Shown here piece after piece: positions 4,867 through 56,025 of a stretch of 64,000 nt of DNA. The notes under the pieces were generated by a model. The model was not told the DNA's origin and did no database searches. It was given only the letters and a program-made list of their open reading frames with translations. Origin of the DNA: Monocercomonoides exilis PA203 (taxonomy: Eukaryota; Protista; Preaxostyla). Each line of letters begins with the position of its first letter. Position 1 is the stretch's first letter. A program made the translations under genes and the position numbers. Location: positions 620,001 through 684,000 of the forward strand of contig LSRY02000042.1 of the NCBI GenBank assembly GCA_001643675.2, written 5' to 3'.

Positions 4867-6176
4867 ATGTTTCCTGAATTTGATTTTGCAGAAGAAGAGG
4901 AAAGACTGATGAAAGAAGAAATGAACGGAATGCTGGAAAAAATGGACAAAGAAGAGCTGAAGCCATTTTTCTCGAAAGAAGAATTCGATGAAAATTACGA
5001 ATTGATTTTGAAAAACAAATATCCATTTGAAAAAGCGCTTGATTTGCTGAAACATGTTGGGTACGAAAATGCAATAAAAACAACAGGGCACTCAATCTTT
5101 ACAGACACTTCCTTGAAGAAAAGATTTGAGAGGAAGATTATTTTTGAAAATGAGAAAACAGAAGGAAAGGATGAAAAGCTTCTGATAGATCTTTGCGAAT
5201 GCTATATTTTGCTTGATAGATGGTTTTCTTATGAATTATTACCAATTTGTATGTCCTGTCTATTGAAAGTTGCTTTGAACAGAAAGGAAGACAAGGAATC
5301 ACTAAAAGAAGTGGAAATGGATCTTCTTGCCTTGAGCAATGCTAGATATCAGGTTTGAGAGCATTTTTCCCATTTTGATATTTTTGCTTTTTTTTCTTTT
5401 TTTAAAAGGAAATTGAGCAAGAATTGTATCTGAATGAGATCAAAGCGATCATCAAATATCATCAGGAGCATTGCAATCTCACTCAGCTTGCCTATCAGTC
5501 TGCTTGGCAGATTTTAATAGACCAATTATTCTTCGATCATAGTCTTGACCATGTTATTGTGAATGAGCTGCATTGCGCTAGAGAAGCAAAAAGAGAACTG
5601 GAAGAGCTGGCAGGGTGTGTGGATTGGAAGAGAAAAGAGGAAGAGGAAATAGGAGAAAAAGAAAGCAGAGAAGCGAAAATCCTCAAACGATGGCTTCAGA
5701 CTTCGGCGTTTTTCTTGGAACACTGTCGGCTGTGGAATGAAGATATTGTTGAGCTTTTCAACAGCATTGTTCAGATATTTCAGGTGGCAAAGGATAATCA
5801 CAGAGACATTAGCAGAAAATGCATTGATTGCTTTCGATATGCTAACTACAACAGAACTGTTGGAATAGACCTCTTGCTGGAAAGCGGAGTGGTTGATATC
5901 ATGCTCGAGGAAACTGTCAAGAATAAGGCCGAAGACATGCAAATAAAATATTATTTGAATTTTTTCGAAGTTGTCTGCAAAAGATTGAAAGAAATGGAGG
6001 AAGAAGGAATGGACGAAGCAAAGCGAAAAGAGGGAAAAAGAAAAATTCATGAAAAGGAAGAGGAAGAAGGATTTGAAGATTTCATCATCAGTTTTCAAGA
6101 GATTCTGCCACACTATACTCTTTATCATCGACATTCTGATCGGATTGATTTCTCTGATTATGTCATTCGTCTCTAG
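4867..6176 (+). CDS. Lineage-specific helical hypothetical protein (expanded family), 2 exons 4867-5352 + 5409-6176, ~417 aa
   Basis: Phase-0 intron 5353-5408 (GTTTGA...AAAAG) joins two ORFs. Motifs KLLIDLCECY, CLLKVAL, IIKYHQEHCNLTQLAYQSAWQ and KEEEEGFED are shared with 61798-63138. The true 5' end may be further upstream. Confidence 0.8.
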
Positions 6177-22008: not shown

Positions 22009-22039
<31 letters not shown>

Positions 22040-25000: not shown

Positions 25001-26702
25001 TCCTCTTTCTTCTCCTTCTTCTCCTTCTCCTTCTTCACCTCATCCTCATTTTTATAATCAAAATTATCATATTAATAATATTTATAATAATATTCTTCAT
25101 TTACAGACCCATCCTCATACACAAACACAAACACAAACACTTTCACAAACACATTCACAAACACATTCATATTTTCATTCACATTCACATTCACATTCAC
25201 TTCCACCATCACAATTGCCATCTTCCTCTTTCTCTTATTGTAAACCAACCTCTTCATTCTTCTCTTCCTCTTCCTCTTCATTTTCTTCTTCTTCTCCTTC
25301 TTCTTCTTCTCCTTTCTTTTCTTCCTCCTCTTCTTCCTCTTCTTCCTCTTCTACTCATTCGCAAGCACATTCTATTCAAAATCAAACAAGAATAAACAAA
25401 GATGATGTTACTAATAAGAAGGATATTATTAAATCCAAAGGAAATGATAAGGAAAAGGAAAAGGAGAAAGAGAAAGAAAGAGGAAGAGGAAGAGGAAAGG
25501 AAAGAAGAAATGAAAAAGAAAATGCTTCACCAAAAAAGATAAGCAATGCAAACAACACATTCATGTCTGTCCTTCATCCATATGATGGAAAACAAAATAA
25601 AACTTTTCAATCTTCTTCTTCTTCTCCTTCTCCTTCTCCTCCTTCTCCTTCTCCTTCTTCCTCTTCCTTTTCTCCTTCATTTCTCAGCCAGAAAGAGTAC
25701 AGCCATTCATCTGCTTCCATTTCTGACTTCTGTCTGATCGACTCTCCTCTCTCACAAGACGACCCCCAAAGACATCAGCTCAGCATCCCTCCGTTTCTGA
25801 ATGCCATTTCTTCTTCTTCTTCTTTTGCTTCTTCTTCCTCTTCTTCTTCCTCCTCATTTTCTTCTTCTTTTCCTGTAAAACAAATGATTTTGCCTTTATC
25901 TTCATCATCATCATCATCTTCTTCTTCTTCTTCTTCTTCTGATCTTTCTTCTTCATTCAATTCTTTTGATAGAAACGCTTCTGTCAGCTTGTCAGCACCA
26001 ACATCATTCCTTTTGGATGAAGCAGAAACAGTCAAATATTCGCTTCAATCTGTTCCTCGTTGCTTTCCTCTTCAATCTTCTTCTTCTTCTTCACATTCTT
26101 CTTCCTTTTTCTCTTCTTCTCCTCCTTTGCCTCCTCCCCCTCCCCCTCCGAAACCTCTTCCATTGCTTTCTTCTTCTTCCTCTCCCTCCGTTTCTTTCCC
26201 TTCTTCTTCTTCTTCTTCATTTTATTACCCACTTTCCATTGAAAAAGCTGATATGAATATTAACTTATCAAATTCTTCTTCTTCCTCCTCCTCCTCTTCC
26301 TCTTCTCCTTCTTCTCTTTTTCATTCTTTTCATCAGCCCAATCAGCTTTTTCTGTCTCAATCGCCATTCACTCACTCAAAATATCATCTGTTTCATCCAC
26401 AAACAGAAGGAAAAGAGAGAAATGAGAATGAAAAGAGAGAAGAAAGAGCATTAAGAAAGGGAGAAAGAGAAGGAGAAAGAGAAGAGAGAGAAGAAGGGAA
26501 AGAAGAAGAAGAAGAAGAAGAGAAGAGAAAGAGGATGAGGAAGAGGAGGATGGAGAAGAAGAGGTGGACGAGAATGAAGACAATTCAGCAGAGATTGACT
26601 GAGACAGGTGCATCTGAGACAAAAGAATTAGATGAAGTCGATTTTGGGCTGAGAGATAACTGCGATTGGGATGAGGACGAAGAAGACACAGACGAAAAAT
26701 AA
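19293..26702 (+). CDS. Very large low-complexity protein (poly-S, KE, HS, N tracts), ~2440-2469 aa
   Basis: 7.4-kb stop-free frame across microsatellite-like tracts. Likelier start MTDKKSQ at 19386. No recognisable domain. Confidence 0.75.
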
Positions 26703-28399: not shown

Positions 28400-29758
28400 T
28401 TAAGATCTTCTTTTTTTCACCACAATGACAATCACCACGATTGCAATTGCAATCACGACAACAATCGGAACAACAATTGCAACAATCAATCCAACGTTCG
28501 ATTTCTTTTTATCTTCTGTTGCTGGATCGTTTTTTGGATTATTGTGTTTCTTCACGTATTTCTCAACAATGTCTATTGGTTCTGATTTTGAATCTGCCGC
28601 TGCCTTTATCCACCCTGCATTAGAATCATTGTAATCATTGGCAAACTCAAATGCATTATCTTGATTGCAGAATTCTTCAATATCAGGAGCAATAATGAAC
28701 AATGAAGTAACAGATGAATTTGCTGTGTTTGAGCTGTCAATTTCAAGATTGTTTGCTGATGGTAGCTGCAGTTGTGATGCTGCCTTTGGTAAGTCAATGA
28801 ACAGTGCGCCTGACTTTCCGTTTGGGGCTGTACAAGATTTAAATGTGCATTTTCTTTTTCTTCCAATGGAAACGACAGAAACATTTGAGCGAACCCACAT
28901 CTCCACACCAGCTGTCTCTCCATCTTCTGATTTTGCTTCATTCACTGTTAATCCATCAATTGTAATGTTAGCCGGCTGACTTTCTCTATCAGATATGTAA
29001 ATTGCTCCTCGAATCTCCAAATTCACTTTCTTTATGTCCACGCCATTCAATGATACTTCACTTGCTCCAGAGATATAAAATGGACATGCAGAAAACAAAA
29101 CAGTGTTGTATTCATCTGTGCATGTAACATTTTCGATATAGACTTTTCCTGTGTCCACAACAACCAGTGCATGAACTTTTGGAGTGTTATGCAAATGTTT
29201 TATTTGATCAATTCTTTGTGATTGAAAAGCGGATCTTTCAAATCGACAGTTGTTGATGGATAGTGATGATGAACCCTCTGGAGCATAAATAAGGAATGCC
29301 CAGCTGGGATTAGACATGGGGAAAATAAACTCCAAATATTCATATTCAACAGTGTTTTTGCACTCCAATAAAGACATGGTATTTCCAGGGACTTCACAAT
29401 TAATCTTAACCTCTTCATTATCTTTTCCATCACTTTTGAATCCTCCAATAGTTATTTTCGTCTTATCAAAAGAAATCACTTCTGCATCAAGTGGGGTTGC
29501 ATCTTTAATTACTTTGATTGTCAAACTATCTCCTTCTTGATTCAATTTTGACAAGGCATTTGAAAAACTGTTCACTGCTTGATCAACTGAAGAACCATCG
29601 TTCCGTGCTCCTCCGCTTTGTCTAACATAAACTTCAGTCAAGCCAGAGTTTTCAATTTCTTGAGTGAGCACAAGCACAGTCGCAATAAAGAGGAAAGTAC
29701 TTTGTTGCATTATTGATGATGTTCTTTTCTCTCGGTAGCAATAGATCTTTACTCTCAT
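28400..29758 (-). CDS. Type I membrane surface protein with probable right-handed beta-helix ectodomain
   Basis: Signal-like N-terminus (MQQSTFLFIATVLVL); VYVRQSGG..NDGSS, INNCRF and FKSCTAPNGKSGALFI beta-helix-type motifs; C-terminal TM GLIVAIVVPIVVVIAIAIVVIVIVV followed by KKRRS. Confidence 0.85.
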   Translation of the reverse strand: MRVKIYCYREKRTSSIMQQSTFLFIATVLVLTQEIENSGLTEVYVRQSGGARNDGSSVDQAVNSFSNALSKLNQEGDSLTIKVIKDATPLDAEVISFDKTKITIGGFKSDGKDNEEVKINCEVPGNTMSLLECKNTVEYEYLEFIFPMSNPSWAFLIYAPEGSSSLSINNCRFERSAFQSQRIDQIKHLHNTPKVHALVVVDTGKVYIENVTCTDEYNTVLFSACPFYISGASEVSLNGVDIKKVNLEIRGAIYISDRESQPANITIDGLTVNEAKSEDGETAGVEMWVRSNVSVVSIGRKRKCTFKSCTAPNGKSGALFIDLPKAASQLQLPSANNLEIDSSNTANSSVTSLFIIAPDIEEFCNQDNAFEFANDYNDSNAGWIKAAADSKSEPIDIVEKYVKKHNNPKNDPATEDKKKSNVGLIVAIVVPIVVVIAIAIVVIVIVVKKRRS

Positions 29759-36938: not shown

Positions 36939-38144
36939 ATGACATCTCGCAAGCTCTTTTACAAGAATGCCGATCTCAAGGATCAGACCATCGTTATGCG
37001 TGTGGACTTTAACGTGCCACTGAAGGCAGATGGAACAGTTGACGATCCCGCACGTATTCATGCAGCTATTCCCACCATCAAGCACATTTTGTCAGTTGAG
37101 GGAACAAAGCTGATTCTTATGTCACATCTTGGTCGCCCAGATGGAAAAGTTAAGCCAGAGATGTCACTGCGCCCCGTTCTTCCAGTGTTGGAAAAAGAAT
37201 TGGAAGGAAAATATGTTGTCAAATTCAGCCCTGATTGCCAAAAAGCAGAAGCTGATGTTGCAAGCCTGAATGTACATGAAATCCTTCTTTTGGAAAATCT
37301 TCGCTTCTACGCTGCTGAAGAGAAGAACGTTGCCGAGTTCGCTCAGAAACTCGCATCATACGGAACATTCTATATCAACGATGCCTTCGGAACAGCTCAT
37401 CGTGCTCATGCTTCAACTGAAGGTATCACCAAATACTTCCCAGGAAAATGCGCATGCGGTGAATTGATGGGATTGGAAGTTAAATTCCTTGATGGAGCAA
37501 CTTCAAATCCAGTCCGCCCATTTGTTGGAATTCTTGGTGGAGCAAAGATCTCTGACAAATTGAATGTTGTCAGAAATCTCGTCCAGAAAGTTGACAAACT
37601 TATCATTGGTGGAGGTATGGCTTACACCTTCATCCGCGCCCAAGGAAAAGAGGTCGGAATGTCTCTCATGCAAGCTGATAAACTCCGCATGTGCGCTGAT
37701 CTGTTGAAGGAATACGGAGACAAGATTGTTCTTCCAATTGATGCTATGTGCTGCGAGAAAGTTGACTTCAAAGGCCGCAAATGCTCTGAACCAGTCCCTC
37801 ATTCAATGGATGACATTCCAAGCAACATGGAATGCGTTGATATTGGTCCAAAAACAATGGAACTCTTCACTGACATCCTTCGCACAGCTAAAACCGTTGT
37901 CTGGAACGGACCAATGGGTGTGTTCGAGATTGAGGAATTGTCAAGAGGTACCTTCCACATTGCAAAAGTTCTTGCTGACATCACAAAGGAAGGAGCAATC
38001 ACCATTGTTGGAGGAGGTGACTCAGCATCAGCTGTCTTGAAGAGCGGTGTTGCTGTGTCCCACGTTTCAACAGGAGGAGGAGCTTCACTCGAATTGTTGG
38101 AAGGAAAGAAACTTCCAGGTGTTGAAGCTCTTACTGATGCATAA
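36939..38144 (+). CDS. PGK: Phosphoglycerate kinase, intronless
   Basis: RVDFNVP, SHLGRP, LLENLRF, NDAFGTAHRAHAS, GGAKISDK, WNGPMGVFE, GGGDS and HVSTGGGASLELLEGKKLPG motifs. Confidence 0.98.
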   Translation: MTSRKLFYKNADLKDQTIVMRVDFNVPLKADGTVDDPARIHAAIPTIKHILSVEGTKLILMSHLGRPDGKVKPEMSLRPVLPVLEKELEGKYVVKFSPDCQKAEADVASLNVHEILLLENLRFYAAEEKNVAEFAQKLASYGTFYINDAFGTAHRAHASTEGITKYFPGKCACGELMGLEVKFLDGATSNPVRPFVGILGGAKISDKLNVVRNLVQKVDKLIIGGGMAYTFIRAQGKEVGMSLMQADKLRMCADLLKEYGDKIVLPIDAMCCEKVDFKGRKCSEPVPHSMDDIPSNMECVDIGPKTMELFTDILRTAKTVVWNGPMGVFEIEELSRGTFHIAKVLADITKEGAITIVGGGDSASAVLKSGVAVSHVSTGGGASLELLEGKKLPGVEALTDA

Positions 38145-38913: not shown

Positions 38914-41900
38914 TCATTTCTGTTTAATAATTGCTTTTGGAACATAACCAGATTTGCCATCATTTTTGACAACATAAAACCATCCGTCTTGATTCTCATT
39001 GATAAACATCACATTTTCTCCCTTTTGCACACTCACGTCGCTGTTGCTCTTTGCTGTGTAGTCAGAAAGCGCCTAAAATGGAGTATTGATTTATCATTTA
39101 ATTTGATTTCAGTTTTTCATTTTAGAAAATTATTTGTAATAAAATAAATAATCAACGTAAAAATTTCAAATGAAAAAAAATATTGCATTAAATAAAGTGA
39201 ATCAAACCTGTCCGTTCACAAGCTCTGCATATTCATCCTCTTCGTCGTCGTCTTCTTCTGGTTCCTGTTTGCTTTTGCTTTCTTTTTCGCGCTTTTCCTT
39301 TTCCATTTTCTCTCTTTTCTCTCTCTCTTCTTTCTCCTTCTGTTCTTTTGCTTTCCTCTCCTTCTCTTCTCTTTCTCTCTTCTCCATCTCCTCCTTCTCC
39401 TTTTTGTCTCTCGAACTCTTAAACAACCCTCCCTTCTCTTTCTTTGCTCCTCTCCTTCTTTCCATCTGCCTTTTTGCCTCCATCCTTCTCTCTGCCTCAA
39501 TCCAACATGCTGAAATAAGAAAGGCAGCTTCTGTTTCTTGTTCAACAAGCTCCTTTTTCAGGCTCTCCATCACCCTTTTCGAACTCACTCTCCGTTTGTA
39601 GTCCTTCCACGTTGCACAAATCAATTGCACCCCCCGCTTTTGCCACATCTCCCTTTCAGCTTGCTCTTTCTCTCTCTTTTCCTTCTCCTCTGCCTCTCTC
39701 TGCGCTTTCTTTCTCTTCTCCATTTCCGCTTTCGCCTTTTGTCTATTCTCGCGACTGCTCCACGCCAAAGATATCAGCGTGGCTGAATCCTGTTCGTCTC
39801 CTTCGTTCATCGACCTCCAATCTTGCATGTCGCTTTCGGCATCTTCGCGCACATTCTTCGCAGTCCACAGACGAGAGATCAATGCAGCAGCTGCTTTCAT
39901 TTTCTCTGTTGCTTCTTCCTGTTTCTGAGCAAATGCTATCGATGATGAAATCTTCTGTCTTTTGCCTTGCCATTTGTATGATATGAATTTGGCTGAATCA
40001 ATCTGCTTATTGCGTTCTTTTTCATTACGGCTTGTGAGTTCTTCCAAAGATGCTTGATAAGACAAATGGCTCATCCACTTCTTCATCATTTCTTCTGCTG
40101 CCTTTTGTTCTATTTGTGCTAGCATTTCTCTTCTTTGAAGAAGAACTGTTTTTCCATCATTTGCTTTTGCTCTTTCTGCCCACAATGAACAAATAAGATT
40201 AATTGACTCAATTTGCGTCTGCTTCCATTTTGATCGTCTTTCATTCAAATGATTCAATGCGCCAACTTCTTCATTATGATTTCTCCATTTTTGAGAGATG
40301 ATTCCTGCACTTTCTGCTTCTTTCTTTTCGTCTTCCTTTCTTTTCTCTTCCATCTCCATCTTAGCCTTCTCGACTGTCTTCATCTCTTTCCATTTTGTTG
40401 CGATTATTGCTGCTGACTCGATTTCAACTTGTTCATCCTTTTCTTTTCTCTGCTTCATTTCTTCGATTCCTTTTCTTCGCATTTCACAATTCTTCCATTC
40501 AGATGTAATAACAATTCCTTTATTCTTCTCTTCTTCTTCCCACTCATTTTTCCTTTGTTTCATTACCTTTTCTCCTTCTTTTCTTTTCTCCATATTTCCC
40601 CACCACATTAACATCATTTTTGAAGCTTCAATTTCTTTCTTTTCGTTTGCCATTCTTCTGCCTATGATTTCTTCTTTTGCATTTCTTCTTTGTATTTCAT
40701 TCCTCCAGTCTTTAGTTATTTGTGCAGCTTTATGCTTTTCCGCTTGATCTTCTTCGTCTCTTCTTCTTTCGAGTTCTTTGGCAGAATACCTTTGGATCAG
40801 CAAATTTGCATAGCGTTGACTCAACACACTGCCTGAATAGAATCTTCTTTCTTTGTCTTTGTCCAATTTCTGTTGTAACACAGATTGAGCAGAATGTCTT
40901 TGACTCATCTTCTTCCATTGATTTGACAGCAAAGCTGCTGATTGAGTTTCTGTCTCAAATAATTTGCTCTTATTTTGCTTTGTGATTTCTGCGGCTTTTC
41001 GTCTTTGTATCAAATTGTTCATTTGACAAGTTATAATTGAAGCTTGTGTTTTTTCTTCCGCTTTCACATTTTCTCTCTCCTTTTCCATTCCTTCTTCTCC
41101 TTTTCTTCTTTCGATTGCATTCATCCATTGCCTCCCGATAACTAATGCTGCTTCTTTTTCGATGTTATCATTTTCTTTTCTCTTTTCCGCAATAACTCTT
41201 TCAGAGTTAGTTCTCATGTTCATTCTTCCAATGTGCTTAGCAATCAACTTTGCTGATTCTAATTCCAATGCCATTAATTCTTCTCTCCTTTTCCTTGCGT
41301 TCTGTTCTGCTTTTCCTCTCAACTGAACATCACTCCATTTTTTGGAGATAAAATCAGCTGAATTCTCTTTCTCCTCCTCCCAACTGCCAACTTTATCAAC
41401 AAACATCACTTTTCTTGCCTTTTTCTTGAGTAACACATTTCTGTAGCTGTTTGATATGACTGCTGCCATTCTGCTTTCAAGTGCTTCATTTTCTTCCTTT
41501 TTGATGTTCATCGCATTTTTTGCATTATTTCGAGAAATGGTTGATTCCCACATTTGACTTATCATTATCGCTGATTGTTCACGTGCTTCATTGCCTTCAG
41601 ATACTCTTTCGAACAATATTTGCTTTGACTTCTGTCTTTGTTCTGTGTTCATCCAATGCTTGCTGATTAATGCTGCTTCTCTTATCTGCTTCTCAAAATC
41701 TTCTTTTCTTTTGCTTTCTGTCTGTTCTTTGGCATAATTGACATTCATCTTTCTTCTCCATGTCTCTGCAATTAATGATCCAACTTCTCTCTCTTTCTTT
41801 TCTTGCTGCATTCTCTTTCCATTCATCTCTTCTTGCGAACGAATCCGACTTATTCTTTTTGCCCAGATCTTCGAAATGATGAATGCAGACAGCAGCCTTT

Positions 41901-44900
41901 CTTCATCGTCCTTCTGCTCATTCAGATGCAAAGTGTCTAAGGCATCTCTTCGATCCATCACATTCAACCAGAATTCGCTTATTAGCAATGCTGACTCTCT
42001 TTGGTTGTCAATATATTTCTCTCTCAGTTGTTTCATCTCATTTTTAGCTTGTTCTCTTTGCAAGTAATTCTGCTGTTGTGATTTGATGAATTTTGCAGCT
42101 GATATTTCCTCTGAAAGAAGGGTGCCTGTTTGCTCCAGCATTCTTTCTTTTGCTTTGTTTCTGACAACTTTGTTTGAATATGCCTCACTTATGATCTTAG
42201 CAGCTTTCGCTTCTTCCTCTTTGTTCTGTTCTTTCTTCTTCAAATATTCTGTTTGAGATTTTTGTCTCAAAATTGCTTTTTTCATTGACTTTTCAATTAT
42301 GCTTACAGCGTTAATCTCTCGAAGCTCACATATTCTGCGTTCTGCTTCATTTCTTTGATTGACTCTTGCCCAATACTCACTCAACAATATAGCTGCTTTG
42401 CTAATTCTATCGTTGTATTCATTTCTTTTCTCTTCCAAATATTCTTTTGCCTTCTCACGATTCATTTTCCTCCTCCATCCATCAGATATAAGCAATCCTT
42501 GAGTGATTTCAATGATTTCCTGCTTCTCCCTTTCCTTTGTCATTCTCTCTCTTGACTTGTCACGTTCATTCTTTGCAGTCCAAATGCTGGAGATGAAATT
42601 TGCTGATTTTGCTTGAGTAATTCTGTCTTCTTCTTTCTTTTTGTTCATTTCCGATTGGCTGGATTGCCTTTCATTCATATTCACCCACCATTTCTCAATT
42701 AAAACAGCAGATTGAATAAGATTGTTGTTGTATTCTTGTTTGTGCTGCTCATAAACTTTCATTGCTTCGTCTCTCTTTGTCTTTTTAGCCCATCCAATTC
42801 CAATTTGCTTCGCTGAGGAGAATTCAGCTGCTGAATGATTGCCTGATTGCATCATTAACACTTCCTTTGCTTTGTTTCTGGAGATCCGGTTGACAAAAGA
42901 CTGATAAATTGTTCGAATAGCTTCAATTTCTTTGTTTTTCACTTCTTCCATCAGTTTTGTGTGAATGATTTGAGCTTTTAGTTTCTGTGTGAGTGAAATC
43001 CAGTGAGTTGAAATAAAAGCAGCAGAATTTTGCTCCTTTGAATTCTGTTCATTCTGCAAAGCTTCTAATTGTTGTTGTGCAAATTCTCTATTTGTCTTCC
43101 TCTGCCACATATTTGTTATATTCCATCCAGCATTTCTTTCTCTTTCTCCTTGTACCTTTGCTTTTCTTTGCAGTTGCTCATTCGATTGCATTCGTATTGT
43201 TGAGTTCATCCATTGCGATGAAATATAACTGGCTGATTCATTTCTGCTTATCCTATCACTTTCCTGCCTTTGTTGAATAACATTCTGACTGTTAATTCTA
43301 TCAACCATGTTTAATCTTCCTCTCATAATCAGTTTAGCAGATGATATTTGCTTCATTTCATCCTCTTTAATGTGCTTCTCCTTCATCTCCATCGCTACAT
43401 CTCTGTTTTCCTTCTTCCTCCATCCAACACAGATAATTGAAGCTGCGTGTATTTCTTCTGTCAAAAGCCCTGTTGACAGCTCAGTCACAGTCATCTTTGC
43501 TTTCTCTCTTGTTTTCATGTTGGAAAAGGCCAATTGAATCAACTTAGCTGCATTTCTTTCCTTTTCGTCTGCTTCCTTTTGCAATCTAATCAATTCGGAA
43601 CATGCAAAATTGCGTGTTTTTGCATTATTCAAAGCAAGAAGAAGGATATTTGCGGAATATTTCTCGTTTTCTTTCTGCTTTTCTCTTCTATTCCACATTT
43701 CTTTTTCAGATATTTCTCTTTGTTTGCTTTTCAACCAGTCGTTTATAACAAGACTTGCTGATTCTTTTTCTTTGTTCTCCCACTCAATTCTCAAATTGCT
43801 CATTTCTTTCTCAGAACTCCTTCTCTTCATCGTCAATCTCCAAAAATGAATGATTTTCTTTGTTTCTTCAATCTCTTCCTTTTGTAACACATCCATTCTT
43901 CTTCTCATTTCTTCTGTTGCTTCCAACCTGCACTTGAATTCCTTCAATTTGTTTGATACAATCAACGCTGAATTCTTTCTGTTTTCTTTATCTTCTTCTC
44001 TTCTCCTCTCAAATTCCTCTTTCTTTTTTTCTCTTTCCATTTTGTCTTCCCATTTCACAGAAATCTCTTTTGCTGCTTTTCTCTCTCTCATTTCATCACC
44101 CATGCTCAACTCTTCCTTCATCTGCATCGCTTCCTCTCTTTTCAGTTGATTTCTCCTTTGTTTTGTTATAAATTCAGCAGATTTCTCTTCTTTTATTTTG
44201 TTTTCTGCTTCTTTTTCTGCTTTCGCATGAATCGCTTTTCTCCTCTCAAACATTCTAACTAAAGAAAGAGAAACCAAAATGGACGAATTTATTTGTTTAG
44301 TTGTGTCTTCATCTTGTTTGTGCTTTATTTCATTCTGTGCATCCAATCGAGTTGAATACCCTTCCCATTTGCGAGAAATGACTTCTGCACTCTCTGCTTC
44401 TTTCTCTTCATTTGCCTTTCTCTTCTCTTCCATCATCATTCGAGAACATTCAACTGTCTTCATCTCTTTCCATTTCTTTGTTATTATCTCTGCTGATTCT
44501 TTTTCATCTTTTTCATTCTTTTCTTTCCTCATCTTCAGTTCTATTTCTGCTCTTCTTCTCATCTCACAATCCATCCATTTCATGTTGATAACACCTCCTT
44601 TTCTCCTCTCCTCTTCTTCCCATTCGTTTTTCTTCTCTTCCAAATTTCTTTCCCCTTCTCTTCTCTTTTCCATGTTCCCCCACCACAACACCATCAATTC
44701 CACTGCTTCTGCTTCAATCTTGACACATCCTGTTTTCTTTTGATACATCATATTCGAAGCATCTTTCTTGTCTTTGTAGTTTTGAAGAGCTTTTTGAATG
44801 ACTTCTGCTGCTTCTTTCTCTTCCTCCTGGTTTATTTTATTTCTGTTGTCATATTCTTCTTTGGACTGAGTAACCAACACGAAAAGATTCCATTGTTTTG

Positions 44901-47900
44901 AGAGAATAGAAGCTGAATACTTTTCCTTTTCACTCCATCTCTCTCTTTTTTCACTCAAAACATCTTTTGATTCTCTTCTCCTCAGCATATTTGCCCATCC
45001 ATTTACAATCACATTCAATGAAGAAATAACTTTTTGTCGATTTTCTTCTCTTCTTTCTTCCAACTCTTCTTCTGCTAATTCTCTCCTTTGTTTATCCTTC
45101 CACGAAGCAGAAATAAGAGAAGAAGCATATTCTTCGTCTTCCTCTTGTTTGACTTTCAGTTCCTTTATGATTTCACTCGCCTCTCTTTTCATCTTCAGCT
45201 TCTTCAATCCATCAGCAATGAACATCATTGCAATAGCCATAATTCTGTCTTCTCTTCTCTTCCTCATCTCCTTCCACCCTTCCTCCCTCTTCTCCTTCTC
45301 TCTCCACTCCTCCATCACCCTCATTGCACTTTCGATTTCCCTTCTCTCTTCTTCCCTTCTCCTCTCCTCCATCTCCTTCTTCGCTTCTTCCGATGCCTTC
45401 TTCGCACTCCATCTGCTTAGTATCCTTTTTGCTGCCTTTTTTTGCTTAGCTTCTTTTATCTTCTGCAGATGTTGTGTCGTTATAAGCGAAAGATGATCCA
45501 AACGGCTCTTTCTGGCGGCTTCTGATGGAGACAGAGGAATTTGATGCTCTTCTTCTTTCTCTCTTTCTTCTTTTCCTCTTTCTTCTTCTTCTCTTTCAAT
45601 TCCTTTTTCTTCTTCCTTTTTATCATCAATTTGCTTAATATTTGGTGTTTTCACTCCAGACAATTCATTTTGTATGCTCAAAGAAGTAATTGTATTGTCA
45701 TTTTCCTTTGGATTTGGCTGTATCAACAGTGAGCTGTTTGAAAGATGTAGCATTCTAGCGACTGATGGACAGTTCATCAGAATTGGCGAGAGAAGAGGCT
45801 GTGGAGGAACAATATCTTCATATTCTTCGTCAATTTTGAGCTTTTCTGACTTTGCTTGCTTTTCTTTCTTTTCTGATTTAAAATTTCTTGTTTTGTTTGT
45901 ATTTTCTGATGTTACTTCGTTTTCTATTAGAATGTTAGTGTTTTCTTCCTCCAAATGTCCATTGCTCATTTCAGTCTGTCTTTTAACCTCTTTCTCGCTC
46001 TGCACAAAAAAAGACTCTTCTGAAAGATTTCCTTTTGCTTCTTCGATTTCTTCATTTTTGAATTCTTTCACTTTCTCTACTTCTTCTTCTTTTGTTTCTT
46101 CATCTGTTTCACTTCCACTCATTTTGATTTTTGTTTCTTCTTCATAACCATCTTTTGATTCAACACTTCGATTTTCCAAATTTTCATTAGCTGTTTCAAC
46201 AATAGTGGTACCTCTTCTTTCATCATCATCATCTTCTTCTTTTTCTTCCTTTTCTTCTTCTGCTTCATCTTCAACCATTTTATCTCTTTTCTCCTTCTTC
46301 TCCTCTTCCTCTTCTCCGTCATCATGTTGATGATGCATTTCAATTTCTTCTTCTCTTCCTCTTTCTATTTCATCATCTTCTCCTCCCTTTTCTTCTTCCT
46401 CTTCTTCTCTTCTTCCTTCTTGTTCTTCTTGTGTGCTATCTGAAGTATCTTCATTGATATCCCCATTTTGTGACAGAGGAGATGAGATGCTCAAAGAAGA
46501 AGGCGATGTTGGAGAAAGAACATTGTTAGAAAGAGATGAAGAAGGAGAAGAAGGAGAAGGAGAAGAAGAAGAAGAAGAGGAGGAGGAGGAGGAAGAAGAA
46601 GTTATTGTTAATGCGGAAGCGAAATAAGGTGGAGGAGGGGTGGAGAAAGAGGAAGGAGAAGCTAAACAAGAAGAAGAATGATGAGAAGGCAGAGGCGTTT
46701 GCTCTTCTGTTGAAACGAGTGTGGAATCAGTTGAATTCTCAGTCGAATGAAGAAGAGAAGAAGATGAAGAAGAAATGTTTTGATTGGATGAAGATAAATT
46801 AGAGGAAGAAGAAGAAGAGGAGGAGGAAGAAGAGGAAGAAGAAGAAGAATTCTGCTCAAATGAACCAGATGGAGAATGAGGAGTTAAAAGAGGATTCACA
46901 TTGACTTCATTTTCTCCACTGCTATTTTCTGTTCTTTCTTCATCATCATCATCTTCATAATTATTATTATGATTTTTGTTATTATTGTCTTCTTCTTCTT
47001 CTTCTTCTTCCTTTTCCTCTTCATCTGCTTCTTCTGTTCCTTCATCTTCTGCTTGTGTGTTATCTTCAGTTGGACAACTCATTTGACTCATGTATTGCTG
47101 AAATATCTGAGTGCCCACAACAGATGGATCAGGTGTTGAGGCAAAAGACGATGAAGACGAAGAAGAAGATGAAGCTGAAGCTGAAGCAGAAGCAGAAGAA
47201 GAAGATGATGAAGAAGCAATAGAATGAGCATTCATTCCATTGGTATAAACATCTTCATCATCATTATCATCTCTATTTCTGGATGTATTTTGATGAGAGA
47301 AATATTCAGTCAAGGAAGATGTGAAGAGGGCATTGGGAGAGCTTATCAATTGAGGCATTTGACTTTCTGATTGCTCAAAAGAAGAAGAAAAAGATGATGA
47401 TGATGATGATGAAGCACATTTCAATGGAGATATTTCAGAGGAAAAAGAAGATGAATCAGAAGATACTTCATTCATGTTGTTCATATCTTCCTTTTCGCAC
47501 ATTTCATATTTTTCGCCTCTTTCGATTGCTTTCATTGAATCATCGTCTGGTTCTCTTATTCCTTTCTCGTCATTTGGAATGAAGATGACTTGTGTGCTGG
47601 ATATCATCGAATTCTCTTCGGCTGCTTCTAAAATGGAACACGAAGAGGAAGAAGAGGAAGAAGCAGAAGCAGAAGCAGAAGCAGAGGAAGAAGAAGAAGA
47701 AGAAGAAGAAGCAAACACATTTGAATAATATTCCTCGCTGCTCATATCGATCATCTCGATGGCATCAACAAGAAATGTGTCATTTGGCGGGGGAGTCTTA
47801 AACACATGATGCGAATAGCAGCATTCCTCTTCCATTTCTGTGGAAGAGGAAGAAGCTGATGCTGAACAATTGCCATCTTCTTCTTCTTCTTCTTCTTCTT

Positions 47901-50900
47901 CCCAACATGTTTGTGTGCAATCTTCAATAAGTTCATCTTGTGGAGCAATTTTGACTGTATCTTCACTTTCAGCAGAGATTTCTGTTTCTTCTTGTTGTTT
48001 CTTCTTCTTCTTGCGAATGACACAGACACAGAGGATGATGATAATTACACCCAGAACAAGAGAGATAACAAAGAAGACAGAAAAGCAGATGATAAAGACA
48101 GTTAAATATCTTGCTTGGTTGGCACTTTTGATTGAATCAGAGACATTGAAAGGGAAAAATACAGAAGATGATTGAACTTGAGGATCACCAAAAAGCAAGG
48201 CAATTTGAGAAGATGAGGACAAATCCTGAGGAAGAGATGAAGAAGGTATAACAGAAACTATCTCATTCTCATTGATTGAGGAAGCAGAATCAACAGGAAA
48301 TGCTTTCGAAGATTGTTTGGCTTTGCTTGATGAGGAGAAGATGACAAAGAACAAATTGCATGGAATCAGAACAGATCCTGTTATCGTTATCTTCAAATTT
48401 TCTCCTTTTCCTCCTCCATTTCCTTCTTCTTCTTCAACAGCAACAGAATCGATCTTTGGAATGAACAAAGGCGATGCTCTTTCCTGTGCCACTCCTTTCA
48501 TTTCACACCCTCTGCTCAGCATCCACAAAGACGTCCCATTTTCCTTCCCGTCTCCTCCCTTCAGACTCGAAATGTCCACAACACCTGAATCAGAACACAG
48601 CACATTCCTTCTCACTGAAGAATAGCCTGAAACTTGAGGACTGTTCTGAAGAAACTCTCCATTTTCTATCTGAAGACTCCCTCCTCTCACGTCGATGCCT
48701 CCTTTCGACGAATTGGCTATGGTTGCATTCTGAATGACAGCAGCACAGCCAACTAAGCACATTATTGACCCATTCCATTCACACATTGAATTGTCTTCAT
48801 TTGATAATGATGACGACGACGATGATGATGGTATGACATTTGATTCAATAAGAGATTCTGCCTTGTCAGCAACGCCGTTCAAAACAGAATTAATAAGCTT
48901 CACATTTGTCGAAGAGAAAGCAAAACATATTTTTGTTGAGATAATCTTAAAAGGCCAAAGAACGAAGTCTTTTATCTCCAAAGTGCCTCCCTTTGCATTC
49001 ATCACTGAGCAATTGAGTTGGACAGCGTCTGCTTCTTGTTCACATTCGCAGTTCTCAAACTTGAATGTTCCGCTATTCATCAGAATAACACCATCTGCAA
49101 CGCCTGTTGTGCCAAACTGTTTCGTAAGCAGAAAATGAACTCCAGAAAATACACAGTTGTCTCTCAAATACAAGACAGCAGAGGAAGAAGGAGCAAAAAT
49201 CGTGTCCAAAGTGAGTTGAGCCTTCACTTTGACTGAAGATGAGGCATAACCAGCGTCAGAGCACACAGTCAAGTCGGAAAGAGAAGAAGAAAGTAGCAGA
49301 GGAGCATCGTGGTCAATCACAATGATACCGTGTGTGCCAGACGAGAGATGCTTGATGCCTTCACAGAGAGACTTGCATGGCTCGTCAAAGGGACCGCAGA
49401 TGCGAAGCGAGGATTGGGCTGAGTTTTGAGAGGAGACGAATATTTGGGTGTCTGTGTAGTAGTTGATGAGGGTATAGATGTCTGTGTATTTGTTCACATT
49501 CACTAAATCTGTGGCAAAGATGGCATTATTCCTGTCAAAGAGCGTTCGACTGAAGTTCATCTGAAAGATGTTGCTGCTAATTTGTGCTTCGATTGAATGG
49601 CAGCTGATGAAGATATCTCGTCCCAGCCCTGCTTCATTTGATGTGAAGATGACATCTTTGAAGAGCAAAGGAAGTTGAGGAATTGGATTTGGTATGCCTG
49701 CCGAGGGGTCAGACACACAGTCAACGAACATCCCTCCTCCACATCCGCCTCGCATTGAGGCAGAGCATTTGGCGAAAGAGCTATTTCTGATTGAAAGCTG
49801 CCCATCTGTTGGCACAGCAAAATAGCTGCTGCCTCCATCAAGTGAGCCATGTGCACTGCAGACGTCCCACGTGCTGTTGGAGACAGAACACTCAAACTGT
49901 GGCTGGAAAGGTGTTTGCAGCACAGCACAATTGCTGGACGATTGAACGATTGATTGAAAAGTTGTGTTTGAGATCGACAGACTCAGCGCTGCATTCCTTT
50001 TATGATTGTCAAATGTGTCTTTGTTTGATGAATGAGCATTCGAAATAGAAAGTAAAGACAAATCCTGCAAATTGATGTACAGAAAATTCGAAGAAGTGAG
50101 TGAAATTGAAGTTAGCGCATCTGAACAAAAAAGCACATTGTACATTAAGCTCATTGATTCAAAAGTTGTGTCAATGACGCTCAAAGAACCAGAAGCAATT
50201 TTTATCAAAAAATACTCCAAAACTTGTGATGAAGAAGAGCATTTGACAGAACATCCATCCAATTTAACTTCTCCATTTGAAGATGACAACAAGATTGAAT
50301 GGGGAGGTGTGAATAATGCAGGCAAAGTTAATTCAATGCATTGCAAAGAAAAGCTGTTGCTACTGCCAAGAATATAATCTAACGAATCAACAGAGCCAAG
50401 AGTACTTTCCAATAACAAAGCAGATGTTTCATTTGTTGCTGATGATTTGACAACATAATTTGTGACATCGCACGCATCTGCCAGTGTTGTTGAGTCCACC
50501 ACAAACATTTCCACTTGAGAAGGAGGTGGCGAAGAAATGACATGTTTCATTCCCATCCAGAAGGTGAAGCAAGGAATAGCAGCACTTCCACACCCAACTA
50601 CATCCGCTCCTGTTTCTGCAGATAAATAAATGGCAGCAGAACTGTAAGGAATAAAAAATGCAGCTAAGTTGATTCCGTTTTTGAATTTTTCGTTGTCTGC
50701 ACCAACAAATCCATTGGCATCGTCAACCCAATTTGTGAAACTGATGTTAAAATGAGTAGGATTTGCAGTGACATTCAGCTCAAAACACCAAAAGTACATG
50801 TTCTTCCCGCAGAAAGCGCTGTTATTTGAAAAATGAATGTTTGAGAAGACGAAATTCTCAGAATTATCAGCGCAGTGCAAATGCAAAAACCCTCCTTTTC

Positions 50901-53900
50901 CTGTTGTGGTTGAGCAGCCACAAGAAGAGACAGATGTTTGCACTGAATCAGATATCTCTGAAATGTCCAATGAGCCTGGATTTTTTAGCTCCAGCTCCAA
51001 AACACCACCTTTTGCACTGGATGAAGACTGAACGTGTTGGAATGAGCAGTTGGTGAATGAAAGGTTGTAGTCCAATATGGAAGAAAAGAGACAAGGAAAA
51101 GATGAGTCAGAGTTTGTAGATAGATTGGTGAATGTGCTGTTTGTGAAAGCTCGTGCTGATTGTGGTGTGGCTGCTATTTCGGGCACTGCAGAAATGACAG
51201 GCCCTGATTGCACAGTCATAAATGATAGAGCGTTGCTGTCATACACCATGTCCACTGAATATGCAATCGAAATAGGCGAATCGAAGAATCTCAAAGGAGC
51301 AACAGAAATGCCAACTGTGGAGTGCTCAAAAGTCAAATGACCAGTCCGCACAGAGAGAAGAGCAAATGCCACATCTGCATTCTGCTCCTGTCCCTGAATG
51401 GAACAGAAAGAAATGCTGATTGAAACTCCTTTTGAGCAAAGCAATGCTGTGAACGCACTTTTAAAAGTAGGCGGAAAGCGGATGCTGACCATTTCAAATG
51501 ATGTGGTGCCATCGTTTGTGAGAACAGCAGCTTCTCTTTCCTCACTTGAGATTGATTGGCTGAGATACAACTTCGACTGCTGTGCTCCTGATGATGATGA
51601 TGATGCTGAAGGGGCAGCAATCACGTGCTTGGATAACTGCAGCGAAATGTTCGATTGCACTTCTTCGACAATCAGCATCTTCAGCTCCGTCCCTTCTTTT
51701 TTCCACATCTTCTTCACAAACGCCACTGTCTGACACGGAAGAGGTAGATCTCCGCATTGGATGACATCCTGCCCTGTGGAATTCACATGCACCACATCTC
51801 TTCTGCGCGACCGCAGCAAGTCCAACAGGTCAGTTCCAGAAGAATACACACCGCTGTCTTCTCCTTCCATCCCACTATTCTCTGGTTGGTATTGATCAAT
51901 GTCAAAATTGAGAGATTCGAAGCTCACAGAATCCAAAAGGTTTTTGCAGATCAGATAGAAGTTTTTTCCTATTTGTGCTGTGTTTGCTATGAAAGAAGGC
52001 TCGGTGAGTGACCAGTTATGAACAGAAGAGGAGCGGCAATTAAGGCCAATACAACCTCCCTTTCCAGAAGCTTCCGAGCATCCACAGTTGGAAAAAGAGG
52101 AGTGGTCAATCAGAAAAAAAGAGTGTTCTTCGATGCTCGCACTGCACACACCACCGAAATGGCAGTTTCCGCTCACACAGTTTTTGATGGTGCTGTTGAT
52201 GAAAGTCGCACTCATTGCGCTGTTGGGTTTGAATAAGAGAACACTTGACTGAGCGCCATGGTTCATGATTGAAGAGAAAAAGCAGCTGGAGAATACAACA
52301 CCAGATTCCGATGGAGATGGAGATGAAGATGGAGATGAATATGAAGATGGAGATGAAGATGAATATGAAGATGGAGATGAAGTTTGGCTGTTTGTTGCTC
52401 TGCTTGTAGCACAATCAACAGTACAGAATGATTCAGCTAGAAAAGTTAGGTCACTCACGTTGACTGCATCAAAAGTGCAACACGAAGCTGCCTGTGTGAA
52501 CACAAACATGCTTTTTGAGTTGTCTGTAGCGCCTTGTTGAGAAATGGTGCAATTTGCCATCGAAAACAGGGCAGAAGAGGTGGATGCAAATGTCACTTTA
52601 AATGAGGCTGTTCCTTGAAAGAGGATGTCACAATCAGTGAAAATGGTTGATGTCCCTTTCGTAGACAACACAATATACTCATTTGAATGTGCTGTTATGT
52701 CAAATTTTATGAATGAAAATGCGATTTCTGTGTTGCTTGTGATCAGCCCAGCTGCGTCCAAAGGAAACTCAATAGGAGAAATCTTCAATGCTCCCACTTT
52801 CTTTGGAGATTGACTGCCTAAATAGGAAGTTATTGAAACATCGCTGAGATCAACTGATTTGGCAAGTTCTGATGAATTGATGATTTGTAAGCAGAGTGAA
52901 GGAATAGAAGAAGAAGAAGAGGAAGAGCAAGAGGAAGAAGTATAAGAAGAAGAAGAGGAAGAAGTATAAGAAGTCCTGCTCAATCTCTCCTTCCCACCGT
53001 TGAGTGTGATGCAAGGGCGAGCAAAGCTTCCGCACCACGGGGCATCGCTAAGCCCAGTTGAATCAACAGAAACAGTCGAAGCAGAAAACACAGTCAGAAA
53101 AATGAACAAATCAACGTCTTGTCCAATGAATCTGTCGTTGTCTGAGCCAAAAAGAGAGTTTTCTCTGTTTGAAATGGAAGAGTGGAAGGGAAAAAGGAGC
53201 GGGGTGACTGAAGAGACGAGAGAGGCACAGAAGAGATAGAGATCTCTTCCAATGGATGCTTCGTTGTCTGTGAATGTCAGCTGAGAGAGAGAAAAAAAAG
53301 AGTCAGAAAGAACAGTTGGTTGGGAGAAGGAGATCATCATGGCACCTCCTTTGCCACCTTGTTCAGAAGAAGAGGAAGATGAAGAGGAAGAAGAAGCAAC
53401 ACGACATTTGCTAAAAGAGGAAGAAGAAACAGACAAAACTTGGCTGGCATCTGATGCAGCGAAAGAGAAGCACCCTCCATTTGTTGCTGAAGGAGAAGCA
53501 GAAACAGAAGAAAGATCGAAGAAAGAGCAGTTTGTGATGCTGACTGAAAGAGAAGATGAAGCACTGGAACTGAAGAGACAGGAATATCCACCCACTTCTG
53601 AGCCTGTTGAATTAGTTTCAGAGGAGTTCATTGAGAAAGGTGCAGAAGAAGCTTCGAAGAAGAAGAGAGAGGCACGAGAGATGGATGAGATGTGGATGAA
53701 CGTTCTGTTGAGGGTGAGTGTGCCAGAGGAGATGAAGAACAAGGATGTTGTGACAAGAGGGAAGGAGCTGTCGCTGCTGATGTGTGTTTCATTCAGATGG
53801 ATGGCGCCATTTTGATGAAACAGATAGAAAATGGTGGGAGAAGGAGCAGCACTGGAGTTGTGCACAATCTGAACAGAAAGAACATTCAATGAGCCAGACG

Positions 53901-56025
53901 AGACAGAAAACAAGGCAAGAAGATTATTTGCAGCTGAAGGAGAAGAAGCAAAGCTTCTGATGAGCTGTGTGGTGATGACAGTAGAAAGGGGGTTGTCTTC
54001 AGTGCCTTGCACGCTCACTGTCCTTGTGTCGATGTCTGTGTTCTTTGTCTCGTGTGCGTGTGTGCCAGAGAGGCAGCAAATGACAGCTGGCTGAGGGGAA
54101 GACAGCTTCGTGGCAGAATGTGCCATTGTGCGGCATGGGTAGCGCTGGACAGAGCCACAGGCAGCATCTTCATCGTCGCCATCTGCAGACACATAGCAGA
54201 TTGTGAGTTCAGTTGTGACATCGTCTGCGAAGTGACTGCAAGTGGTGCCATCAAAAGTGCACATTCGCTTGTCTGATCTGTCTGTTGAGAAGCAGGAAAC
54301 GAAGTGTGGATGAGAAATGGACTCTAAAGTGGTGATGCAAACATCGTGGCCACAGGGACTAGAGACGTCTGCACACATACAGCCATCGAAGAGGAAGAAA
54401 GAGAATGTCGTGTGTGTTGTGATTGAGGAGGAGGAGGAAGAAGAATCTGAAAGAGGCTTCCATCTCAATGCTCCGCCGTAGTTGTTGCAGCCACAGCGGC
54501 GGAAGGAGCACTCGCTGAATGTCAAGCCAACTGTGTTGTCTTCAACTGAACAGCCACCGCCATAGAGTGTTGTGATGTTGTTGTCCAGAAATGTTGTCTG
54601 AGAAATGATGAGTGGCGAGTTGCCATCTGTTCCTGTGTGAAAGAGTGAAGATGTTTTGTCTGAGGAGATCGTTTGAAGAGAATGAGATAAATGAATATGA
54701 CGTGAAGATGGCAAGGTGGAATTATGAGATGAAGGTGAAGAAGCTGAAGAAGAAGAAGCAGCAGTAGAAGATAATGCAGATGATGGTAAAGAAGAACAAG
54801 AAACGCAACGAAGAGCTCCGCCTAATCCCTGTCCAAAGCAAGTGGAGAACAAACAGTTTTCAATCTTCAGATTCGCAACTTCTGCAACTTCTATTGCTCC
54901 GCCTGATGTTTTTGAGACGCAAAACGAAAGATTCGAGTTGATCACAGACATCATCTGGATGTTCTTGACAAATATTGCCCCGCCAGCTGCAGAAGAAGAG
55001 ATGCACCGGTCGAATGTGCAGCTCTCAATAGACAGCTTTGCTGTTGGCTTGTCTGCGAGATAGAGAGCTCCGCCGCTTCCTGCAGAACACTCAGAAAAGG
55101 TGCAGAAAGTGAAGCGATGATTTGTGTCTGAGGAGGAAATAACAGTTTGGTTGGTGAAGTGTTTTCGATCATAGACAGCGTTTGAAGCGGAGGCGCAGGA
55201 TTGAAATGTTGAGTTGAAATAATCAATGTTGTTGTGAGGTGCAATGTTTGATATGAAAGATAGTGAATGAGGAGATAAGCATCCTGAGAACAAGGATGCT
55301 TGAACAGAAACTGAAATTGATGACAACCTGGAGCAGTAATCGTTTATGTCTTGAAGATAAGTATGCGATACATTAAAAAATGTGCTGTGTTTAATGTTTA
55401 AGTTGGTGATAGTTGATGATAAAAATGAATAATGAGAATTGGTTAGAATAATAGAATTAATTATCGATGATTCCATATGAAATGAGCAATCAGATGGAAC
55501 GGTCATGGAAGATAATAAAGAACCAGAATTTATTGGACGCGATTGGGGATGATGCATTGAAGGAGATATTCTCACTGAATCAAAAATAATTGATCCTTCA
55601 ATTCTTTTTAAGGTTTTTCCTTCAAAAGGTGATATCTTCATGTTGCAAGAGAATAATGATAAAGAGGATGATGAAAAATGCATGACAAAAATTGTTGAAG
55701 GCTTAGAAGTCAAAGATATCCTTCTGAAACACAATGAAGAATTATCAATTAAAATAATTGAAGATGAATAAATTTCAGTGAGGTTATTGAATTCATGAGA
55801 GATGTTCCTCGTGTATTTAGACACATCTATTACGTTAAACTTTATTTGCTGAAAATGAAGTGAATTATCCTCAGGTTGCTCGCTGAAATCTGTTAAAAGG
55901 TGATTTTTGTTTTTCATGTAATCTTTATTATTTTTGTTGCATTCGCTTTCATCAATAATTTTATTTTCACATGTGCAACTCAAAAAATTACAAAGAAAAA
56001 GAAAAAGAATTATGAATAAATGCAT
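38914..56025 (-). CDS. Giant single-pass membrane protein (~5658 aa): signal peptide, beta-helix ectodomain, TM, 57 x 35-aa IQ-like repeats, C-terminal SH3; exons 56025-39208 + 39072-38914
   Basis: 16.8-kb ORF with GGAI/FxxC and CGxxxxPC modules, a TM at ~48016-48109 followed by RKKKKK, and a repeat rod at ~39470-45440. Phase-0 intron 39073-39207 (GTTTGA...TTTTAG) adds ALSDYTAKSNSDVSVQKGENVMFINENQDGWFYVVKNDGKSGYVPKAIIKQK*. Confidence 0.88.

Follow-up and report, generated by a model that had tools for sequence, protein, structure and literature searches.

A giant predicted membrane protein of Monocercomonoides exilis with a cytosolic array of 57 IQ-like units

The giant gene and its parts

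The stretch of DNA considered here, referred to below as the window, comprises the 64,000 nucleotides at positions 620,001 to 684,000 of the forward strand of contig LSRY02000042.1 (assembly GCA_001643675.2) of Monocercomonoides exilis PA203, a mitochondrion-free anaerobic gut protist. Its main feature is a giant gene on the minus strand, in which a single open reading frame (ORF) of 5607 codons (window 39202-56025) holds a complete array of 57 tandem units of 35 residues that resemble the IQ motif. No paper describing the giant protein was found in the literature. The array, searched within the whole protein and as part of the tail alone, gave no homologues in the protein libraries searched; as these seem to lack the proteins of this organism, the negative result carries little weight for other oxymonads and does not confine the array to this lineage. 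The genome searches covered an assembly of 101 contigs and 82,301,135 bases, which agrees with the published Nanopore assembly of this strain (101 contigs, approximately 82.3 Mbp; PMC8767320).

The gene is best explained as encoding a type I membrane protein, with an ectodomain outside the cell and a linker, a long helix, an ER/K-type stretch and an SH3 domain inside; this topology was read from the sequence. The start codon is followed by a putative N-terminal hydrophobic signal peptide (aa 1-19; window 55969-56025, minus strand, as are all parts of the gene), which was taken from the translation without a predictor. The ectodomain of 2620 residues (aa 20-2639; 48109-55968) is rich in Ser and Cys, has N-x-S/T sequons at 40 sites and is one member of a large family of paralogues, as judged from its composition and from a genome search. 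A single transmembrane segment apparent in the translation (aa 2640-2670; 48016-48108) is followed by a run of Lys. Next comes a cytosolic low-complexity linker of 856 residues (aa 2671-3526; 45448-48015), with a high content of Ser (21%) and of acidic residues (Glu 17.5%) and with 4.4% Pro. A Pfam scan of the linker returned sub-threshold noise only, and it is best explained as disordered and acidic. The array follows (aa 3527-5530; 39436-45447); it was delimited by its Trp-anchored register, its profile, AlphaFold models and its likeness to IQ motifs, and is predicted to form a continuous alpha-helix. Behind it stands an ER/K-type stretch of 76 residues that passes into an acidic patch and extends up to the splice donor (aa 5531-5606; 39208-39435; Glu 33%, Lys 24%, Arg 9%).

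A putative intron of 135 nt (39073-39207), read from the sequence as running from GT to AG, contains the in-frame stop of the long ORF and would join the ORF in frame to a terminal exon (38914-39072). This exon consists of a 52-residue SH3 domain (codons 38917-39072) and a stop codon. The exon was searched alone against Pfam, no joined sequence of ORF and exon having been built, and its match to PF00018 (SH3_1) scores 44 bits, where the cut-off is 22.9 (E 1.7e-11), and spans positions 2-48 of the 48 in the profile. Through this putative GT-AG intron, the SH3 exon is assigned to the giant gene.

The repeat array

An earlier note on this DNA had described 57 tandem units at strict 35-residue spacing within window 39470-45440, and this description holds. 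With the units anchored on their Trp column, exactly 57 fall into register (aa 3527-5530), and 52 of the 56 anchor-to-anchor intervals measure exactly 35 residues. The exceptions already named, a 29-residue unit 31 and a 36-residue unit 40, were right (intervals between units 30 and 31 and units 39 and 40), and two further ones occur near the array ends, namely 33 residues between units 2 and 3 and 51 between units 55 and 56. Runs free of insertions and deletions extend over 28 units (anchors 3607-4552) and over 16 units (anchors 4897-5422). Mean pairwise identity among the 57 units is 21.5%, and Tandem Repeats Finder detected no 105-bp period in the DNA. The low identity, the invisibility of the period in the DNA and the long indel-free runs together imply that the copies are old and that selection has kept their length and a few of their columns.

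These columns, numbered relative to the Trp at 0, agree with the consensus E-x-x-(S/A)-A-x-x-I-x-x-x-W-x5-R-x-x-(A/S) proposed previously and extend it to columns +13 to +17. Upstream of the anchor, Glu occupies column -11 in 37 of 57 units, Ser or Ala column -8 in 47, and Ala column -7 in 40; column -5 is hydrophobic in 84% of units, and column -4 is always a large hydrophobic residue (100%), being Ile in 45. The anchor itself is Trp in 41 of the 57. Downstream, Arg is found at +6 in 43 units, Ala, Ser or Gly at +9 in 56, and Met, Leu or Ile at +13 in 44, followed by basic residues at +16 and +17. The residue after Ile(-4) is mostly Ser (25/57), and the position that matches the Gly of an IQ motif is mostly Asn. 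The core of the unit holds conserved aromatic and hydrophobic residues 13 apart. The 13-residue spacers are of ER/K type. The array contains not a single proline in 2004 residues, as against 3.4-4.4% in the rest of the protein. Large hydrophobics make up approximately 26% of unit residues and charged residues 40% of the array, with a net charge of +1.5 per unit and of +2.7 for the core from -5 to +17. In the genome search the unit profile retrieved single units down to E 1e-8, far beyond chance.

A longer order is superimposed on the 35-residue period. Several units carry Gly at +18 or +19 and have Leu, Arg, Phe or Tyr instead of the anchor Trp: units 7 (44719-44823), 13 (44089-44193), 19 (43459-43563), 25 (42829-42933), 32 (42112-42216) and 39 (41377-41481), all on the minus strand. 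The spacing statistics define a super-repeat zone from 41377 to 44823, in which these variant units succeed one another at 6, 6, 6, 7 and 7 units (permutation p 1.25e-4), and the association of Gly units with a non-Trp anchor is significant across the array (Fisher p 0.0013). The overall similarity between units rises weakly at lag 6 in the first half of the array (z 1.8) and at lag 7 in the second half (z 2.7). Apart from this order, units 47-50 (40219-40638, minus strand) are a diverged copy of units 8-11 (44299-44718, minus strand), that is, a segmental duplication of about four units at a distance of 39 units, which is more recent.

Relation to IQ motifs

The earlier note had called the units IQ- and Sfi1-like and had proposed scans with the profiles of both families. 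Neither PF00612 (IQ) nor PF08457 (Sfi1) gives a match on the array; searches of the 2108-aa tail (E <= 1) and of two 210-aa pieces of the array (E <= 10) against Pfam returned no IQ, Sfi1 or Nebulin match. Likewise, the IQ consensus [FILV]Q-x3-[RK]-G-x3-[RK] has no strict and one relaxed match in 1996 array residues. The IQ part of the claim nevertheless stands at the level of profiles, together with the predicted helix, although the units fail both the Pfam model and the consensus.

The evidence comes from profile A1, the alignment of the 57 units. Searched against 1.84 billion representative proteins, it gave three matches only, and the best two are IQ arrays. The first is an ASPM-like protein (E 2.9e-7, 24 matched stretches) with a Pfam IQ assignment at E 3e-186 as well as CH and ASH domains; the second is an IQ-array protein of 857 aa (E 4e-4; Pfam IQ E 1e-66). 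When the units were compared by hhalign with the IQ windows of these two matches, a probability of 81% (P 1.2e-5) was obtained. To avoid circularity, 20 canonical IQ motifs of the same genome were chosen by the Pfam model, independently of A1, and these too aligned with the units in the same IQ register (79% probability, P 1.6e-5). One reversed and 20 column-shuffled controls all gave P >= 0.067. In this register Ile(-4) corresponds to the Ile of the IQ motif, Ser(-3) stands for Gln, Trp(0) is the aromatic at Ile+4 and Arg(+6) is the second IQ Arg. Among solved structures the best match to A1 was the IQ peptide of rdgC in a calmodulin complex (entry 8zlw), at a non-significant E 0.22, and the language-model cluster nearest to the units is an IQ family (score 0.88), which is to be taken as a lead only.

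The third match to A1 is of another kind. It is a 255-aa protein (P0003), which has five unrelated 28-residue repeats and no IQ array (E 5.6e-4). The core of its repeat, Ser-Ile-Ala-Phe-Ile-Ser-Lys-His-Trp, resembles the unit core.

Compared with IQ arrays such as those of myosin lever arms and ASPM, the giant protein has in common the tandem placement of sites along a long helix and, within each site, the order small-small-x-hydrophobic-Ile with an aromatic at Ile+4 and Arg at Ile+10. It differs in having Ser for Gln, in the loss of the Arg-Gly pair, in Ala or Ser instead of an aromatic at Ile+13, and in a period of 35 residues against 23-26 (PMC2173958). It differs also in its place, being part of a membrane protein's cytosolic tail and occurring in an organism without myosin: a search of the genome for the myosin head domain found none, in agreement with the literature on M. 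exilis (PMC6759080). From the profile comparisons, the unit motif of approximately 26 residues (-8 to +17) may be a degenerate IQ motif, an assignment that is held tentatively, with chances a little under even, as part of the light-chain reading given below. The case illustrates that a binding motif can diverge a long way below the reach of the model of its family and yet stay recognisable to a profile derived from the repeats themselves.

As a separate observation, the genome of this myosin-free organism has 21 places with canonical IQ motifs; they are distributed across many genes, of which some have frames that stay open for 1500-3250 codons.

A second gene with the same motif

The motif is not confined to the giant gene. 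About 29-33 copies of it are found in an open frame of 2986 aa on contig C14 (2255838-2264798). In hhalign these units match A1 at 96.7% probability (P 3e-10), and the columns conserved between -8 and +17 are those of the giant gene. The anchor intervals in this gene range from 35 to 72 residues and are mostly 36-47. Since the second gene keeps the columns at irregular spacing, the conserved 26 residues would be the functional element, and the exact 35-residue period would belong to the membrane protein alone, as far as can be read from the two sequences. The two genes differ in their architecture as well, as the second one has no recognisable membrane segment ahead of its array, and behind the array it has no SH3 domain but a long region of low complexity in which Gln, Pro and Ser abound. 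With its freely spaced motif, it provides a built-in control for what fixes the repeat length.

The gene on C14 probably begins with a short first exon and an intron whose GTTTG donor is like that of the giant gene. Its Gln/Pro/Ser-rich region has many PxxP-like stretches and could be a ligand of the SH3 domain of the giant gene.

Predicted fold of the array

The modelled parts of the array are predicted to be almost entirely helical. An AlphaFold run on four units, in which the alignment was composed of 12 non-overlapping 4-unit blocks from the same protein, returned a single helix over residues 2-139 with a mean predicted local distance difference test score (pLDDT) of 95.3, and all five models exceeded 93. 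Seven units modelled without an alignment were 96% helical at a lower confidence (pLDDT 76, predicted template modelling score (pTM) 0.28). The single-sequence model breaks in unit 16 and in variant unit 19, the latter being its lowest-confidence unit (pLDDT <50) and non-helical; on this basis the variant units are candidate soft spots of the helix. A Foldseek search of the PDB with the 7-unit model returned nothing, as is to be expected with extended helices. The array would measure approximately 300 nm (1995 x 0.15 nm) if it is helical over its full length. A helix-turn-helix solenoid of the TPR or PPR type was also considered and is ruled out, as four units form one helix at a pLDDT of 95 and each unit has too few hydrophobic positions.

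On a helical wheel the conserved columns from -11 to 0 gather near 340 degrees and those from +2 to +20 near 200 degrees, so that the two faces stand approximately 140 degrees apart. Oppositely charged pairs are commonest at i,i+4, with 207 against 143-191 at other spacings. An ER/K single-alpha-helix pattern is found only in the spacers and in the last 76 residues, and the array as a whole does not have it.

A proposed light-chain-decorated rod

Motor lever arms, ASPM, Sfi1 of the centrosome and the myonemes of ciliates contain long arrays that bind EF-hand proteins. To our knowledge, no surface receptor has been described whose cytosolic tail is such an array and combines an exact period with a super-repeat and a terminal SH3 domain. 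The reading given preference here, at slightly less than an even chance, is that the array is a segmented helix decorated by EF-hand light chains, which tethers a surface protein to ligands of its SH3 domain. For such a rod we infer a partner, a stiffening, hinges, a Ca2+ response and a role as a tether.

Each motif would be clasped by one two-lobed EF-hand protein, which may be calmodulin, a calmodulin-like light chain or centrin, with one lobe on the Ala-Ile-Trp face and the other on the Arg-Ala-Met/Leu face. On the helical wheel, the two opposed conserved faces would suit a clasp rather than one-sided packing. The basic core, at +2.7 and with aromatic and hydrophobic anchors 13 apart, fits the pattern of a basic amphipathic calmodulin target. 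Candidate partners are encoded in the genome. A canonical calmodulin (C56:~154261-154771) matches calmodulins at E ~1e-71, a canonical centrin (C10:~240639-241063) matches centrin-2 at E 5e-48, and there are approximately 20 further EF-hand loci. Calmodulin-like genes are located at C1:~1418593-1419123 and C19:~1253113-1253367. Decoration would then stiffen the helix into a rod that could reach about 300 nm in length and in which a softer variant unit recurs after every 6-7 sites. If adjacent bound proteins touch one another along the unbroken helix, these contacts would hold the 35-residue period, which is also how the period of 33 in Sfi1-centrin has been explained. The SH3 tip would dock on a proline-rich partner, and the rod would tether the surface protein to an internal structure or space it from one, possibly in a Ca2+-dependent manner.

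Several points weigh on the other side. The units fail PF00612 (gathering threshold 20.3 bits), the very model that finds 21 IQ motifs elsewhere in the genome, and they have neither the Gln nor the Arg-Gly pair that make key contacts in IQ complexes; the profile likeness could be a convergence of short amphipathic motifs. As the 35-residue spacing exceeds the 23-26 of IQ arrays (PMC2173958), compact calmodulins would not touch one another. The pseudo-alignment behind the AlphaFold helix came from the same protein, and a monomer model cannot separate a decorated helix from a self-associating one. EF-hand binding is a proposal from sequence and monomer models, and the gene is a predicted one, whose putative splice to the SH3 exon was read from the nucleotide sequence.

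A bolder version of the light-chain reading is regarded as doubtful. It would have the IQ motif re-used, in a lineage that lacks myosin, for a membrane-anchored segmented strut of about 300 nm, in which contacts between EF-hand proteins set both the period and the super-repeat, Ca2+ switches stiffness or length, and a surface adhesin is mechanically coupled to an SH3 ligand inside the cell. If true, it would be an independent invention of a periodic scaffold of the nebulin or Sfi1 type from a different motif. 

If light chains do bind, the giant protein would act as a natural strut on the molecular scale, with a defined length and perhaps a sensitivity to Ca2+, that links the surface to internal structures, and it would offer a clean test of how the geometry between ligands fixes repeat length.

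Comparison with Sfi1

The other half of the earlier description, that the units are Sfi1-like, survives only in layout. Neither the gene nor the rest of the genome contains a match to PF08457, and the Sfi1 core pattern [FWL]xxW[KRH] does not fit any of the 55 Trp residues of the array. This is the pattern which Kilmartin used for Sfi1, whose consensus is A-x7-LL-x3-F/L-x2-W-K/R (PMC2173958). What the two have in common is a near-constant Trp interval on a predicted helix poor in proline (entirely lacking it here) and 26-29 conserved residues per site. The Trp interval is 33 in most non-fungal (higher-eukaryote) Sfi1 proteins, 69 in GSBP1 and GSBP2 of Spirostomum and 35 here, and the literature accounts for the constancy of the interval by the helix geometry of EF-hand proteins bound next to one another (PMC2173958, PMC2063913, PMC9946354). 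The hydrophobic partners of the Trp are at -4 and -5 in the giant protein, and at -3, -7 and -8 in Sfi1. In contrast to both Sfi1 and the GSBPs, the protein described here is membrane-anchored and ends in an SH3 domain.

The prevalence of the 33-residue spacing in Sfi1 has been attributed to centrin-centrin contacts, for which successive sites on a continuous helix must be turned by approximately 65 degrees (PMC2063913). With 35 residues the turn per unit is 260 degrees, compared with 60 degrees for 33. By analogy, the 26-29-residue footprint and the 35-residue pitch would suit an extended binding similar to that of Sfi1 better than the compact IQ mode at 23-26. The backbone proteins of Spirostomum have a Trp every 69 residues and no BLAST link to Sfi1 (PMC9946354); they show that scaffolds of this kind can become unrecognisable to BLAST with the periodic Trp retained.

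Alternative readings of the array

A self-associating rod is considered unlikely, and would be the first alternative to the decorated helix. Copies of the protein, or segments folded back at the Gly units, would pack as a non-canonical coiled coil or bundle in which Ile, Trp and Met/Leu are buried. A related suggestion of the earlier note, that 35 represents five heptads of a coiled coil, has arithmetic on its side, as 35 is exactly five heptads and the Trp keeps its heptad position. The approximately 26% of large hydrophobics must also be buried somewhere, the interruptions of the 7-unit model close to variant units may represent turns, and monomer AlphaFold draws coiled-coil sequences as long helices as well. 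However, the heptad signal itself is lacking. Period 7.0 accounts for 0.0% and period 3.5 for 6.3% of the hydrophobic power of the averaged unit, and the best heptad register places large hydrophobics at 34% of a/d positions (43% with Ala), far under usual coiled-coil values; hence heptads with hydrophobic a/d of the canonical kind were not found, and the coiled-coil suggestion is disfavoured. The conserved residues, Arg and Asn among them, are on two faces rather than one, the 7-unit model with its low pTM has no confident packing, and in the paralogue on C14 the motif recurs at intervals not divisible by 7.

An alternative with still smaller chances is a ruler or stabiliser comparable to nebulin, in which each unit would lie on one actin subunit, the super-repeat would track a longer period of the filament and the SH3 domain would anchor the end, the whole being attached to the membrane. 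A nebulin module has 35 residues and a nebulin super-repeat has 7 modules. The layout of nebulin, nebulette and LASP therefore coincides with that of the giant protein in the 35-residue modules, the super-repeat (approximately 7 modules there and 6-7 units here) and a C-terminal SH3 domain after a linker, though without a relation in sequence. Nebulin's central super-repeats bind thin-filament proteins, and its C-terminus is Ser-rich with an SH3 domain (PMC12130008). The net positive charge of the unit would be in keeping with this alternative, and both actin and several proteins that bind it are present in the organism (PMC6759080). Against it, PF00880 (Nebulin) has no match on the array pieces (E <= 10) or in the genome (E <= 0.01), and no SDxxYK-type motif is found. 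The unbroken, proline-free predicted helix differs from the helix-plus-linker modules of nebulin, its super-repeats are mostly of 6 units, and its N-terminus is a transmembrane protein with an ectodomain. The earlier note had remarked that 35 x 0.15 nm = 5.25 nm is near the spacing of actin; this link is disfavoured, as an actin subunit spans about 5.5 nm and the calculated drift amounts to approximately 1.5-2 nm per super-repeat, and as the conserved residues lie on two opposite faces and leave no single side turned to a lattice. The same motif on C14, being irregularly spaced, cannot follow a lattice.

A bare single alpha-helix spacer of the ER/K type, devoid of a stoichiometric partner and with conserved residues that merely tune the stability or length of the helix, is very improbable: the high predicted helicity, the peak of opposite-charge pairs at i,i+4 and the ER/K character of the 13-residue spacers and of the last 76 residues speak for it, but the array is only 40% charged, its most conserved Ile, Trp, Met/Leu and small residues would be exposed to solvent with no role in a charge-stabilised helix, and an exact period kept through divergence to 21% identity is not needed in a spacer.

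Ectodomain family and neighbouring genes

The ectodomain has no Pfam match. With a fragment of it (aa 280-900) as query, at least 70 paralogous loci at approximately 33% identity were detected across the genome. Most of these loci are open frames of 2300-3100 codons, and the giant gene alone has about 5600; the long tail would therefore be a one-off addition on a common surface-protein scaffold, as judged from the sequences of the family. In language-model features the nearest neighbour of the ectodomain is a Preaxostyla cluster (0.97), followed by clusters of DUF1565, Chlam_PMP and Beta_helix (0.90-0.96). From these features it looks like a right-handed beta-helix of the Pmp type.

Other genes in the window are of a different kind. 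At 19293-26702 on the plus strand there is an ORF of 2469 aa without a Pfam match, in which the stretch 24001-26000 has an extreme guanine-cytosine (GC) skew of -0.58. This ORF was considered as a paralogue of the giant gene and rejected, as it has no similarity to the ectodomain of the latter. On the minus strand, an ORF of 452 aa (28400-29758) has a weak, sub-threshold C-terminal match to Psg1 (PF14610, E 8e-5, 23 bits against a cut-off of 30.1). Another minus-strand ORF, of 359 aa (1890-2969), matches the ISXO2-like/IS1595 DDE transposase domain (PF12762, E 1.5e-19) and is located in a eukaryotic contig. The nearest neighbour of the giant gene is an intronless phosphoglycerate kinase gene on the plus strand (36939-38144; PF00162, E 1e-136), which is placed tail to tail with it at about 770 bp from its stop codon; the exact phosphoglycerate kinase protein is also found on a 1.3-kb Logan contig of run ERR12411576.

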